Positions 41,118 through 47,829 of a DNA stretch of 64,000 nt are shown in pieces. The stretch is taken from positions 8,370,001 to 8,434,000 of the forward strand of contig NC_086120.1 in NCBI RefSeq assembly GCF_963921235.1, written 5' to 3'. Under the pieces are notes generated by a model. It saw only the letters and a list, made by a program, of their open reading frames with translations. It searched no databases and was not told the DNA's origin. The first letter of the stretch is position 1, and each line of letters opens with the position of its first letter. This DNA is from Mobula hypostoma (lineage: Eukaryota). Both the position numbers and the translations under genes were made by a program.

Positions 41118-41900
41118 GTAATAATGCCGGAGGAATCATTGTGGAGTTTTTCCCGGTGTCCTCTTGTACCATCGTACATAGTATATATATATAAACTACT
41201 ATACTATAATATAATATAATATACAATGTACATAACGCACCTTACTGCTACTCAGGAAAGATTCCATCCCCACATTTAGACTGAATTGAACTCCTCAAAC
41301 AGTCAGGGTGGATTTGAACTGAACAACTGAATGGATTGTGGTGGAAACAGAAAGTATGTAATTTCTACTCCTTCGTACCTGGATGTGTGAGGGGCATCTC
41401 TAGTCAAGGGATGGAGAACAGCCACTGAATCAAGGAAATAACGGGGAGCTATATATATATATATAAATTCAAAATTAAACTTCATTTGTAATTTTAAAAT
41501 GTAAGAAGGAAGAAACAGTGTAAAACATTAACAATTATTGTTGTGATATTCAGTGAGGTAAACTTTTAAAACACAGAGAAATAAGGCACTATGGCTCCCC
41601 GTGCGGCTCCATATCGTGATTCCCCTTTAATTAGTCAGGAGACTATCCAGCCTATGCAGTAGTCCTTCGAGCATCAGAGGATCAGAGTCTGTAGATCAGA
41701 GGGTTGTAGGTTACATAAGTGCTGGCGACGAATGAGGGTACAGAGCCTTGTACCTTCCTCCTTCAGTGCAAAAGTGGGAAATATCAGACAAAGAACAGAT
41801 CTGCCGTCTCACTACAGTGACACCACTTCATTCCGACGGCGTGTGACTACGAATGGCAGAGTTTCAAAACCTTGCACTGGTTGGTCAGTGTGAGTGTCCC

Positions 41901-41930
41901 TGATTTGCATGGTTTCCTCCCCGGTATAAA
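41901..41930 (+). promoter_or_regulatory. Ig light-chain promoter: decamer/octamer plus TATA
   Basis: TGATTTGCAT at 41901-41910 (the light-chain orientation of the octamer) and TATAAA at 41925-41930, ~95 nt before the ATG. Confidence 0.9.
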
Positions 41931-42020
41931 TGACTCTATAACTAGGCAACACCGGCAACGGCGGCCACAGTCTGTCACAGATCCAGCGGCTGAAGGAAGG
42001 CAGGAAACTGACGGACAACA

Positions 42021-42069
42021 ATGATACGAACGCTGTGCTTTTTCTGGTCTCTGGTAACTTGGCTGGGCT
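42021..42069 (+). CDS. Ig light chain exon 1, signal peptide MIRTLCFFWSLVTWLG
   Basis: ATG in context ACAACAATG; 49-nt hydrophobic exon; phase-1 donor GTAAGT at 42070. Not present in the ORF track. Confidence 0.92.
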
Positions 42070-42173
42070 GTAAGTACAGGCAGCATGTCTGCGCCGCCAG
42101 CGCGTGCCGTTACGGGCTTTTGGGGGTCACATTAAAGAGTCAATGGGTAAAGTTGAATTCCTGTCTTTTACAG

Positions 42174-42530
42174 TTGGAGAGTCCCAGACTCTGACTCAGT
42201 CTCCGACCGTGTCGGTAAGTCCAGGAGCCACGGCCACGCTGGAATGTAACATCGGAACAGAGGATAGCTATCATGTATATTGGTACAAGCAGACACCGGG
42301 AACAGCCCCAAAATTGTTGCTCCGGTATTATCACACACGTACTGAGCCGGTCTATGCGCCTGGGATTAGAAGCGACCGTTTCACGTCGACAGCCAAAAGC
42401 GCCGGCACCGTTTACCAGTTAAACATTAAAAATGTGGAGCTGAATGACGCGGCTATTTATTACTGCGCAAAGTGGATTTCGTCGGGCAGTATTTATTGGT
42501 TCGGCACAGGGACCAAGCTCTTCGTTACAG
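42174..42530 (+). CDS. Ig light chain exon 2, pre-joined V-J, sigma-like
   Basis: Acceptor TTTTACAG at 42173. Reads FGESQTLTQSP..LECNIG..WYKQ..RFTS..YYCAKWISSGSIYWFGTGTKLFVT with both Cys, the Trp and FGxG intact, a long CDR2 and no RSS. Donor GTAAGT at 42531. Confidence 0.95.
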
Positions 42531-42546
42531 GTAAGTGACAGAAAAA

Positions 42547-45270
42547 TAGAACATAGAACATAAAACAATGCAGCACAGTACAGGCCCTTCGGCCCAAAAT
42601 GTTGTGCCGACCTTTAAACCCTGCCTCCGATATAACTCCCACCTTAAATTCCTCCATATACCTGTCTAGTAGTTTCTCTAATTTCACTGGTGTATGTGCC
42701 TGCGCCACCGATTCAGGCAGTGCATTCCACGCACCAAACACTTTCTGAGTAAAAAACCTTCCTCTAATATCCCCCATGAACTTCCCACCCCCTACCTCAA
42801 AGCCATGTCCTATTGTGCTGAGCAGTGGTGCCCTCGGGAAGAGGTGCTGGCTGTCAACTCTATCTATTACGTTTAATATTTTGTATACCTCTATCATGTC
42901 TCCTCTCATCTTCTTTCTCGCCAGAGAGTAAAGCCCTAGCTCCCTTAATCTCTGATCACAATTCATACTCTCTAAATCAGGCAGCGTCCTGGTAAATCTC
43001 CTCTGTACCCTTTCCAATGCTTCCACTTTCTTCCTATAATGAGTCGACCAGAACTGGGCATAGTACTCCAAGTGTGGCCTAACCAGAGTTTTATAGCGCT
43101 GCATCATCACCCCGCGACTCTTAAACTCTGTCCCTCGACTTATGAAAACTAACACTGCATAAGCATTGTTAACTACCCTCTCTACCTGTGAGGCAACTTT
43201 CAGGGATCTGTGGACATGTAACCTTAGATCCCTCTGCTCCTCCAAAGTGTACCGGCACAGACTTCTCCGGGTTGAACTCCATCTGCCACTTCTCAGCCCA
43301 TTTCTGCATCTTATCAATGTCTCTCTGCAATCTGCGACAATCCTCTAAACTATCCACAACACTACCAAACTTTGTGTCGTCTACAAACTTGCCAACCCGC
43401 TCTTCTACCCTCACATCCAAGTCGTTAAAAAATCACGAAAAGTAGAGGTCCCAGAACCGATCCTTGTGGGACACCAATAGTTACAACCCTTCAATCCAAA
43501 TGTACTCCCCCCACCGCGACCCTCTGCCTTCTGCAGGCAAGCCAATTCTGAATCGACCTGGCCAAACTTCCCTGTATCCCATGCCTTTTGACGTTCTGAA
43601 TAAACCTACCATGTGGAACCTTGTCAAATGCCTTATTAAAATCCATGTAGATCACATCCACTGCACCTCCCTCATCTATATGCCTGGTCACTTCCTCAAA
43701 GAACTCTATCAGGCTTGTGAGAAACGATCTGCCCTTCACAAAGCCATGCTGACTGTCCCTGATCAGACCATGATTCTCTAAACGTCCATAGATCCTATCT
43801 CTAAGAATCCTTTCCAACAGCTTTCCCACCACAGACGTAAGACTCACTGGTCTATAATTACCCAGACTATCCCTACTACCGGTTTTGAACAATGGGACAG
43901 CATTCGCCTCCCTCCCTTCCTCCGCTACCATTCCCGTGGACAACGAGGACGTAAAGATCCTAGCCAGAGGCTCAAAAATCTCTCCCCTCGCCTCGTGGAG
44001 CAGCGTGGGGAATATTCCGTCAGGCCCGGGGACTTACCCGTCCTAATGTATTTTAACAACTCCAACATCTCCTCTCCCTTCATATCAACAAGCTGCAGTA
44101 GCAACCTCACTCATATTGTCCTCACTGTCATCAAGTTCCCTCTCATTGATGAATACCAAAGAGAAGTATTCATTGACGACCACGCTCACTTCCACAGCCT
44201 CCAGGAATGTCTCCCCACCTTTATCTCTAATCGGTCCTATCTTCAGTCCTGTTACCCTTCTGTTTTTTACATAATTGAATCATTCCTTGTGGGTTTCCTT
44301 TACCCTACTCGCCAAGTCCTTCTCATACCCCCTTCTTGCTCTCCTCAGCCCCTTCTTAAGCTCCTTTCTTGCTTCCCTATATTCCTCAATAGACCCATCT
44401 GATCCTTGCTTCCTAAACCTCGTATGCTGCCTTCTTCCTCCTGACTAGATTTTCCACCTCACTTGTCACCCATGGTTCCTTCACCCTACCATTCTTTATC
44501 TTCCTCACTGGGACAAATTTATCCCTAACATACTGCAAGAGATCCCTAAACATCGACCATATATCCATAGTACATTTCCCTGCAAAAAACAATATCCCAA
44601 TTCACACCCGCAAGTTCTAGCCTTATAGCCTCATAATTTGCCCTTCGGCAATTAAAATTTTTCCTGTCCTCTCTGATTCTATCCTTTTCCATGATAATGT
44701 TAAAGTCCATGGAGCGGTGGTCACTGTCCCCCAGATGCTCACCCACTGAGGGATCTGTAACCTGACTGGGTTCGTTACCTAATACTAGATCTAGTATGGC
44801 ACTCCCCCTAGTCGGCCTGTCAACATTCTGTGACAGTAATCCGTCCTGGGCACACATAACAAACTCTGCCCCGTCTGAACCATTGGAACAAATCAGGTGC
44901 CGATCAGTATTAGGGAAGTTAAAATCACCTATGATAACAATCCTGTTATTTTTGCAGCTTTCCAAAATCTGTCTCCCAATCTGCTCCTCGGTTTCTCTAC
45001 TGCTACCAGGAGGCCTATAGAATACTCTCAATAGAGTAACTGCTCCCCTCCTGTTCCTTACTTCCACCCATACCGACTCAAAAGAGGATCCTGCTACATT
45101 ACCCACCCTTTCTGGAGCTGTAATAGCGGTAATAGTATCCCTGACCAGTAATGCCACCCCTCCTCCCCTCCCCGCACCCCATCCCTTTTAAAGCACTGAA
45201 ATCCAGAAATATTGAGAATCCATTCCTGCCCTTGTGCCAGTCAAGTCTCTGTAATGGCCATTACATCATA
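42547..45270 (-). mobile_element. 5'-truncated CR1 LINE inside the J-C intron, antisense
   Basis: (TAGAACA)n tail at 42547; RT motifs NYRPVSLTSVVGK, QHGFVKG, KFVDDTK; endonuclease motifs IIGDFNFP and AITETW ending at ~45270. Confidence 0.92.
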
Positions 45271-46255
45271 AATCCCTCCTGCAATTACTAGCTGTCTGAA
45301 TATGGTCACCTTGCAATTACTAATTTATACATCATTATTTATTGGTGAATTGAACGCCCGTCTCTGTGTTTGCGCGGTTCCAGTCCTATTAGTTTGGTCG
45401 CTTTTGCGTTGGCTTGTCGGAAGCCAGCGTGAGAAATACCAGGTTCCCAAAATGCGGCCCGAGTTATCACTGAGGGCATAATGTAGCCGACTGAAGTAAG
45501 CACGCTGTTGTTAAGACAACAGAACCAGACGTTTCAAGTAATTGTATCGGGACGATTCAGTGAAACAACCCTCGTACTTTCACTGAACTTCCAGTCCTCC
45601 CGTCCAGGTGGAAGACTCCTGTAGAAACCCATCCAATTGTTTCGTCTTTTCCTCCTCTCTCCTGCCATCTTCTCAATAAAGCGCTGCTCCTTTTGGGCTA
45701 CGGCCGCTCAGTGATTCTGGTCGCTGCACCGACTAAGGGCGGAGCTCCGGGTCGGGAGAACCCGACCTTCTTTCGCCCAGAATAATTGCTTCTGCATCGT
45801 CAGAGCGTGACTTCCCTAAACCAGCTGTTAAACTGAGGATCGCGCATATGTTGCCCTGCACACTGGGTAAGCGCAGAATATGAAACAGGTTTATTCTGTT
45901 TAGAACTGTGGGTGGCATTGGTGGGACGGCGCATTAGTGTCGAATGGATGTGACAAAGGGCTGGGCACGTGTCATTGGTGGCGCAGCCAGACAGCTGGAG
46001 ATGAAGTCACCGACCTGGTGATTATGCATTCCAGGGACTCACCAGGACAACCCTCAAAAAGGGATTTGACTGCAAATGTCTCTTCCTTCAGCGTTGACCA
46101 AATGCACTGCCCTGCGTAGGCTAAGGGCTGTTCCCTGGTGAAACCCTGTGTCCCATTCTTGAAAGCTGGAACATTTAATTCGCGCTTCCATCCGCTGTGA
46201 AATGCCACGAGATGATTGTTGACCTGTAATATGTCTCCTATTCTTCCCGATCCAG

Positions 46256-46578
46256 ATCAACAGCTCCCGGACCCTTCAGTAAAATTGTTTGGGCCGTCAG
46301 CCGAGGAGATCTCCGCTAAAGGAACTGGCACCTTAGTTTGCCTGGTCAGTAAGCTGTCGGTGGGCTTCCCTGTCATCAGCTGGACAGTGGACGGGAGTCC
46401 GACGAGCCGCGAGGCGCAAACAAGCGCAGTGAAGCGGAACACGGACAGCACTTTTAGTCTCAGCAGCTACCTGACGGTGCCCGGCACAGACTGGAGTAGC
46501 GGCAAGGTATACTCCTGCGTGGTTAAACTAGGAGCAGCCTCGACAACATCCGCAACAGTCACACAGTCCAGTTGTTAA
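46256..46578 (+). CDS. Ig light chain exon 3, constant C1-set domain, sigma-like
   Basis: Acceptor TTCTTCCCGATCCAG at 46255 is phase 1 and matches the J donor. Reads DQQLPDPSVKLFGPS..LVCLVS..ISWTVDGS..FSLSSYL..YSCVV..TQSSC then stop; the terminal Cys is available for the H-L bond. Confidence 0.95.
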
Positions 46579-46916
46579 AACAGAGCGCGGCATCGGACTT
46601 GTTTGCTCCGAAAAACATGATATACTTTTTACTAGTATTTTCACCCACCCTATCACTCTTTTCACTGTACTCCGAAATTCTGATCAGTTCTCTCTGATTT
46701 CCACTTTTTTGTTAGAATATTTGTAGCGAGGCTGATTTTGTTCCGTTTCACCCTCCGAGAAGCTAGGCGGGGTAAAAGTGGCCTGTCACCTGTCATCATT
46801 AGAAATATCAGCCAGTGAGTCAGCTAATAACTTTAATCTAATTAAAATTATTAATTAATATGCTCATGATTTCTCAGCAATATCAGACTGACAGATGGTA
46901 ACGGCCACAAACTTCT

Positions 46917-46922
46917 AATAAA
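46917..46922 (+). terminator. Probable polyadenylation signal of the light-chain gene
   Basis: First AATAAA seen after the stop, with a GT-rich tract downstream; an alternative ATTAAA lies at 46841. Confidence 0.6.
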
Positions 46923-47829
46923 GGTGTTTAGTGCAGGAATGATTTCCGTGTATGCGTATTTTTCTCTTGTTCGCTCTTCCCATTCTCATCCGGGTGGGAA
47001 GAGAGAGGAGGCTCGCAAGGACTGAACAGCACCGACCCATGAAGTCCGAGAGTTCAAATAACGTCAGAAATCCTACCGTCTTGCCGTTGGAAGGGGGAAG
47101 GAAGGAGGGGAGGAGGGGACGGGGGGAGAGAGGAAGAGTCAGAGAGACAAATAATCAGAGAGACCTGGGGTGGACAGAACTGATGAGGTGAGGAAAAATT
47201 TCCCGAGAAGCAACGAAGATGAGGTCGGAGTGGTGAGGGATGGCTCTCTCTCGATGTCGTTGTACCTATTTCCAACCCTAGCACTAGTGGAGACACAGCA
47301 GAGGAGAATATTCCAACGCATTCCGTTGCCCCGTTTAATACCCTTCAAGCCCTTTGACCTGATACTTTCCCATGGAAAGCCAGATAGTATCTTCAGCTGT
47401 TGAGTCATCTTGCCTTCCCACATAAAATATGCCCCACCATTATCTACTCACATGACAGTGGTCTGGTACCTACACTAAGTTTGCCAAACATTGCTGTGGA
47501 CATTTGCCCTTGTCCTTTCTCAAAACATTCCCACATTCCAGACTACATGTTACGAAACTCTACTGTGTGTGCACATTGAGCATATACCAAGAAGGAATCA
47601 ATTTTAACTTTTTACTTACACTCCACCCGTTGATTCCTCTTTGGTAGAATATACAGGAAAGTAAAATACACAACTAAATACAGGTAGCAAGCTCACTTGC
47701 TAACTAAAGTATAATCGTTTAAGTAGTGGAATTATCACAATAAACTTCACAAGGGCAGTCGGCTAAAATAAGATGCTGTACAAGCACAACCAATAGTACG
47801 ATTATAGCAAGCTACGAAGGGATCCTAGC

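Follow-up and report, generated by a model that had tools for sequence, protein, structure and literature searches.

When the variable (V) and joining (J) segments of an immunoglobulin (Ig) light-chain gene lie fused in genomic DNA, is the join a property of the germline or the trace of a rearranged B cell, to which isotype does the gene belong, and how did the fusion come about? These questions are raised by a gene at positions 41,901–46,922 of a 64,000-nt stretch of the lesser devil ray Mobula hypostoma (NCBI RefSeq assembly GCF_963921235.1, contig NC_086120.1, positions 8,370,001–8,434,000 of the forward strand), which at its full length is called the window here. We conclude, with a probability of roughly 0.85, that the locus is a minicluster of V, J, and constant (C) segments of the sigma light-chain isotype in which V and J are fused in the germline. 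From its own octamer/TATA promoter, such a gene would be transcribed and its leader, VJ, and C exons spliced into a complete light chain of 242 amino acids without RAG recombination. If the chain is expressed, its third complementarity-determining region (CDR3) would be fixed, and diversity would come only through choice among many clusters and through somatic hypermutation.

A complete light-chain gene with a fused V–J exon

The gene model was obtained by direct reading of positions 41500–47300 followed by splicing with a script; coordinates of the gene are window positions, and its features lie on the forward (+) strand. The center of the model is a single exon (42174–42530) that holds the end of the leader and framework regions 1 to 4 (FR1–FR4), matches the V-set family of Pfam, and contains no internal recombination signal sequence (RSS). 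It is bounded by the acceptor ...TTTTACAG and a GTAAGT donor, and it reads ...YYC AKWISSGSIYW FGTGTKLFVT. Comparison with the V 3′ and J 5′ ends of split genes places the CDR3 with its V–J junction, AKWISSGSIYW, at 42467–42499 and the junction proper at ∼42491–42499, flanked by ...GGCAGT and TTCGGC. A motif scan of the VJ exon found no CAC[A/T]GTG heptamer, no ACAAAAAC[C/T] nonamer, and no GGTTTTTGT nonamer.

The remaining parts of a light-chain gene surround this exon in the expected order. An octamer, ATTTGCAT, lies in light-chain orientation at 41903–41910, 118 nt 5′ of the ATG, and direct reading places a TATAAA box at 41925–41930, a TATA-like match ∼97 nt 5′ of the ATG. The leader exon (42021–42069; MIRTLCFFWSLVTWLG plus one base) begins with the ATG at 42021 and ends at a GTAAGT donor; its sequence is kept in the paralogues with which the cluster was compared. 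A leader–VJ intron of 104 nt precedes the fused exon, and a J–C intron of 3.7 kb (42531–46255) with GT...AG boundaries follows it. The C exon (46256–46578) opens after the acceptor ...GATCCAG, encodes a C1-set domain, and terminates ...TQSSC, with the C-terminal cysteine, before the TAA stop at 46576–46578. Downstream, AATAAA at 46917–46922 is the likely polyadenylation signal, identified by pattern match only, and ATTAAA is also present at 46841.

Both introns are of phase 1, and the coding sequence of 729 nt yields 242 amino acids. All 242 of 242 codons are open, and the canonical residues are kept: both domain cysteine pairs, Trp41, the FGXG motif, and the C-terminal cysteine. Pfam recognizes a V-set domain (E value, 1.3e-20) and a C1-set domain (E value, 1e-15) in the product. 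The NCBI gene model P0001 (Mobula hypostoma) is the same 242-amino acid protein at 100% identity and bears the automatic name "immunoglobulin lambda-1 light chain-like." A retrocopy was ruled out because both introns are retained. A preliminary description, made from the letters of the window, had proposed a complete light-chain gene of 242 amino acids with matching splice phases, in which V runs in frame into J without an intervening heptamer or nonamer. The exon model and script splicing agree with it in all checkable detail, and so does the motif scan of the VJ exon.

Evidence for the sigma isotype

Isotype was assigned with a maximum-likelihood tree of 42 light-chain rows computed in IQ-TREE. 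A clade with 100/99 support unites the window gene with the sigma chains of nurse shark (P0043) and horn shark (P0030), other elasmobranch sigma genes, and sigma-like chains of bowfin and teleosts. Type I/sigma-2 forms a clade of its own (96/88), which includes P0109, the named type I chain of Leucoraja erinacea; the sigma-2 reference was modeled from M. hypostoma contig C2 at 236–238 Mb and is 76% identical to "type I immunoglobulin light chain [Leucoraja erinacea]." Lambda (with P0060) and kappa lie across a 99/97-supported branch from sigma. Among human-named proteins the best matches are the "immunoglobulin sigma light chain" of nurse shark (65%) and horn shark (69%); the named lambda chain of sandbar shark stands at 41%.

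Loop lengths give the same answer. CDR1 is 6 amino acids long, and 47 amino acids separate the start of CDR2 from the second cysteine (Cys104), values equal to those of both named sigma chains; the corresponding CDR1 and CDR2 plus FR3 lengths elsewhere are 8 and 45 amino acids in type I, 8 and 41 in lambda, and 6 and 39 in kappa. Sigma is known for a short CDR1 and for a CDR2 that exceeds those of all other isotypes in length, at 9 to 10 amino acids by IMGT (PMC5985310). Because tree placement and CDR lengths agree with this long-CDR2 hallmark, assignment of the window gene to sigma, rather than to sigma-2/type I or lambda, is supported by sequence comparison. The lambda or sigma-2 identity implied by the automatic NCBI name was ruled out by the same two lines of evidence; the label "lambda-1-like" is attached by NCBI to sigma, sigma-2, and lambda genes alike. 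The sigma-type assignment of the preliminary description thus stands, now with a phylogeny and with CDR lengths that concur.

In the protein tree, the nearest relative of the window gene is a gene of Hemitrygon akajei (99/89), with 94% identity to P0002 in the C domain and a CDR3 of equal length. This affinity hints at a lineage older than the divergence of mobulids from whiptail stingrays.

The join in the DNA sample and in a second organism

Could the fused exon be a V–J rearrangement that arose in a B-cell clone and was caught in the assembly? Lymphoid or blood DNA, from which the assembly may have been made, does carry rearranged alleles. We examined X1, a DNA run with the same species label. 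Its contigs tile positions 41700–42585 with 0 differences at a depth of 12–14 and cross the V–J junction, where coverage is no different from that of the single-copy sequence on either side. All loose contig ends listed for X1 lie near a transposon boundary at ∼42546, and none is listed at the junction. An X5 contig from a second source, organism B, covers 42236–42596 with 24 substitutions and 0 gaps, a point divergence of 6.6% (a copy ∼93% identical), and it has the same gap-free junction and the same intron start.

Two points weigh against reading the join as germline: the unknown tissue of the DNA sample and the probable identity of X1 with the assembly's own sample. Set against a somatic capture, in addition to the depth and the listed contig ends, are the identical junction of organism B at 6.6% point divergence, 13 joined clusters on the same chromosome, some of them pseudogenes, and a joined sigma gene in a sawfish assembly. 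We therefore rejected a captured B-cell rearrangement, to which we give next to no credence, on the combined weight of depth, the organism B copy, and the 13 joined clusters. Since depth across the junction is that of a single copy and the junction is shared with organism B, the evidence that the V–J join is germline, as the preliminary description had held, is indirect but strong. For the period before organism B, we infer the age of the join only from CDR3 length.

Joined and split genes in a sigma array

The complete genome was searched in six frames, and tblastn was run on fetched loci; together they placed the window gene within an array. Approximately 17 sigma V–(J)–C miniclusters lie on contig C73 between 8.13 and 9.31 Mb, all on the + strand and 25–110 kb apart (cluster coordinates are those of C73). 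Thirteen of the 16 sigma V exons are joined and continue straight into FG(P/R/T)GTKLF; the other three are split. By tblastn, joined V exons start at 8130466, ∼8138000 (a pseudogene), 8209505 (a pseudogene), 8271223, 8412182 (the window gene), 8502029, 8611140, 8798147 (with a frameshift), 8975226, 9097034, 9136238, 9161221, and 9304159. Split V exons start at 8669305 (with a frameshift in V), 8711046, and 8847997.

Rearranging sigma genes generally have a kappa-like RSS layout, with a 12-bp spacer at V and a 23-bp spacer at J. The split genes at 8.67, 8.71, and 8.85 Mb follow it: the RSS 3′ of V consists of CAC(A/T)GTG, a 12-bp spacer, and ACAAA(A/C)ACT, and the RSS 5′ of J consists of a nonamer, a 23-bp spacer, and CACTGTG. 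The same signals flank V and J in a sigma gene of the skate Amblyraja radiata. The spacer between V and J is conserved at ∼370–380 bp in the three split paralogues. An octamer stands 117–121 nt 5′ of the ATG in 10 sigma clusters, both joined and split.

The search for split paralogues that the preliminary description had called for thus returned three in the assembly, plus the skate gene. Its picture of the window gene as a special, single, invariant joined gene is not supported in that form: 13 of 16 V exons are joined, the CDR3s vary among the joined sigma genes, and a sawfish sigma gene is joined too. Nor is the joined state exceptional among isotypes, for the lambda, sigma-2, and kappa-like genes sampled from the same genome are joined as well.

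Two features of the array stand apart from the question of joining. Intact C exons at C73:8441415–8441732 (L034) and 9301256–9301573 (L035) have no recognizable V within ∼8 kb upstream; either these exons are orphans or the V of their cluster is far away or lost. The V exons of the clusters at 9136238–9137838 (L026) and 9161221–9162821 (L027), 25 kb apart, are identical, a sign that a segment of the array was duplicated very recently.

Origin of the fused junctions

Measured against the ends of split genes, the joined genes retain differing amounts of the 3′ end of V and the 5′ end of J, and some carry extra bases. Such varied trimming is the pattern of imprecise coding joints. The junctions fall into types: one comprises the clusters at 8130k, 8209k, and 8271k and the window gene; a second, 9097k; a third, 8975k and 8798k; a fourth, 8502k and 8611k; a fifth, 9136k and 9161k; and a sixth, the gene of the sawfish Pristis. 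In a DNA tree of the V exons, split genes are nested among joined ones at 100/98–99 support, and the tree requires four or more switches between the two states. This V-only tree is poorly resolved at its base; the count of joinings therefore stands as a minimum, based on a handful of well-supported nodes together with the junction types.

A joined gene is unlikely, on mechanistic grounds, to become split again, and these data therefore point to several independent germline joining events in the sigma array. Lee et al. came to the same conclusion, independent germline joinings, for nurse-shark kappa (PMC2193156).

The junction of the window gene belongs to the leftmost part of the array. The four leftmost clusters (V at ∼8.13, 8.21, 8.27, and 8.41 Mb) have equal junction and CDR3 lengths and have in common an older junction form, ...TACTTG|TTCGG..., which is preserved in organism B. 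From this pattern, we infer one old join followed by duplication of the joined cluster. The split ancestor would have had the arrangement V-heptamer-12-nonamer, ∼380 bp, nonamer-23-heptamer-J, as three paralogues still do. In an old event, a V(D)J-type coding joint made in a germ cell would have fused V and J, and the joined cluster would then have multiplied by tandem duplication into the leftmost group of four. It counts against this account that the germ-cell RAG origin is read from the form of the junction.

A VJ exon free of RSSs is also what a primordial V gene would look like, that is, a relic that was never split and that predates the insertion of the RAG transposon. Such an origin is scarcely credible here. 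The window gene is nested in a young family, with the split members of which it has promoter, leader, V, and J sequences in common; the junctions vary as imprecise coding joints do; the skate sigma gene is split; and the published analysis of joined shark genes likewise favored joining of formerly split genes (PMC2193156). Fusion of a once split gene by germ-cell recombination is the origin that we prefer.

Is the joined copy in use?

Whether the window copy of the gene is used today is uncertain, and the innate-like role that the preliminary description suggested for its product is hypothetical. Several observations weigh against its use. A search of sequencing runs turned up none recorded as RNA that holds the gene. 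Two runs with the same species label, X21 and X22, yielded no exon contigs, their matches being to transposon only; both are small, are guessed to be RNA, and come from tissue and age that are not known. The organism B copy has a TAT>TAA change in FR2. Between the two copies, the exons differ at 17 places, with 12 replacement, 1 nonsense, and 4 silent changes, a near-neutral ratio. No other ray sigma gene has an end branch as long as that of the window gene (0.17, compared with 0.08 for Hemitrygon).

These observations would fit a gene that is structurally intact and no longer used, a joined sigma cluster under relaxed constraint that is becoming a pseudogene. The premature stop of organism B, the 12 (plus 1 stop) to 4 ratio of replacement to silent changes, the long end branch, and the empty X21 and X22 runs all speak for such decay, as do residues that are derived relative to the family consensus (VYAPGI for TYGPGF, WFGTGT for LFGPGT) and the pseudogene state of the 8.14- and 8.21-Mb neighbors in the same junction group. 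Against it stand the fully open reading frame with its cysteine pairs, Trp41, FGXG motif, and C-terminal cysteine, together with intact splice sites, octamer, and TATA box. The 94% identity of the C domain to its counterpart in a stingray from a different family speaks for lasting constraint on the lineage, and the silence of the RNA runs counts for less given their size, their unknown tissue, and their merely guessed nature as RNA. On balance, we consider a decaying copy unlikely, though a serious contender. The structural finding, a germline-fused sigma minicluster, holds whether or not this copy is decaying.

A retrotransposon in the J–C intron and a nearby V remnant

The J–C intron owes its length to an antisense long interspersed nuclear element (LINE), a non-LTR retrotransposon; the spacing from V to C is much shorter in most other clusters. 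The degenerate LINE fragment occupies 42546–45230 on the − strand, with an approximate 3′ limit, and carries pieces of reverse transcriptase and AP-endonuclease ORFs that match RVT_1 and Exo_endo_phos_2 in a domain search of the intron ORFs. Its boundary at 42545/42546 is visible as loose contig ends and a jump in depth. The insertion is common to organism B because the X5 contig extends into the LINE. The element is exceedingly abundant in DNA contigs and in contigs of the runs guessed to be RNA.

An inverted fragment of a sigma V segment (FR2–CDR2, WYKRTPGKTPQ*FLRHYY) lies at window positions 41118–41171 on the − strand, ∼1 kb 5′ of the V exon. A longer inverted V fragment occupies the equivalent place in the 8.13-Mb cluster (G000:C73:8129126–8129206, − strand; locus L005:176–256). 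These fragments are probably the remnant of an inverted V pseudogene older than the duplication of the clusters that carry them.

Light-chain genes in other species and of other isotypes

The sigma gene P0007 of the sawfish Pristis pectinata is joined in genomic DNA, and the sigma gene P0032 of the skate Amblyraja radiata is split. The NCBI model of P0032 is full-length, 241 amino acids, and spans the unrearranged V-RSS...RSS-J spacer (L039:5001–7490, CM021394.1). As P0032 shows by pairing a full-length model with a split gene, full-length NCBI models say nothing about the joined or split state, and we rejected them as proof of joined sigma genes in many species.

Within M. hypostoma, V and J are joined in the sampled lambda genes (C2, 154.5 and 155.68 Mb), in sigma-2 (C2, 236–238 Mb), and in a gene with a kappa-like C region at C2, 155.60 Mb (L046, G000:C2:155596000–155603500). 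The C region of L046 has the kappa-like stretches ...LVCLVNNFSP... and ...VTHQSLGSPLKRSIQKSGC and takes a long, poorly placed branch beside kappa and lambda. These features make L046 a candidate kappa-type gene of a batoid; a published isotype table lists kappa of the little skate as not determined (PMC5985310).

Discussion

The sigma chains of nurse and horn shark (type IV, teleost L2; GenBank entries named "immunoglobulin sigma light chain variable region") are the closest known counterparts of the window gene. They are of the same isotype and fall in the same well-supported clade, at 65–69% identity over the full length and 74–79% in the C domain, with equal CDR1 and CDR2 plus FR3 lengths; the difference is that V and J are fused in the genomic DNA of the M. 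hypostoma gene. The preliminary description gives the nurse-shark sigma genes as split and rearranging. A full-text literature search returned no paper stating that sigma is joined or split in cartilaginous fish; the primary paper on shark sigma light chains, that of Criscitiello and Flajnik (2007), was outside this search.

Germline joining itself is well documented in this group. All lambda/type II genes of cartilaginous fish are joined, as are all type I/sigma-2 genes of skates, and in nurse shark some kappa genes (NS4) and one sigma-2 gene are joined (PMC5192425, PMC4279169, PMC2193156, PMC12227049). In a paper of 2025, lambda is set apart from the other isotypes as "entirely V-J joined" (PMC12227049). 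The joined NS4 and sigma-2 genes of nurse shark are expressed preferentially early in ontogeny. The germline-joined clusters of cartilaginous fish share with the window gene the minicluster of leader, intron, fused VJ, intron, and C, the presence of split paralogues beside it, junctions resembling coding joints, and several independent joinings. The M. hypostoma genes differ from them in isotype, sigma, and in the dominance of the joined state (13 of 16 V exons). Gar, coelacanth, and turtles likewise have germline VJ fusions on the wider sigma/sigma-2 branch, in the form of joined sigma-2 genes (PMC5985310); these are of another isotype and lineage and number 1–4 genes, compared with an array of ∼17 clusters here. 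What would be new is sigma as a joined isotype, which extends the classic germline joining of elasmobranchs; the result is useful to comparative immunologists and unsurprising in principle.

A broader proposal can be made tentatively, at somewhat less than even odds. In rays and sawfish (not, or not fully, in skates), sigma may have been converted almost wholesale to the germline-joined state by repeated V–J recombination in germ cells, with at least four events in this genome. The light-chain repertoire of the devil ray would then be essentially preformed, RAG would hardly be needed for light chains, and joined sigma genes would here be described explicitly for the first time.

The locus also carries a warning for annotators: "lambda-1-like" names the wrong isotype for the window gene, and full-length models mask whether a gene is split or joined.

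Germline-joined Ig genes show RAG at work on the germline and are the textbook case of antigen receptors freed from somatic rearrangement. The ray locus, where sigma is mostly joined, split and joined copies are adjacent, and several junctions are independent, offers a clean natural series of this process. The array could be used to date germline RAG events and to ask whether selection favors joined light chains, a fixed partnership with neonatal IgM being one conceivable role, or whether they simply build up.

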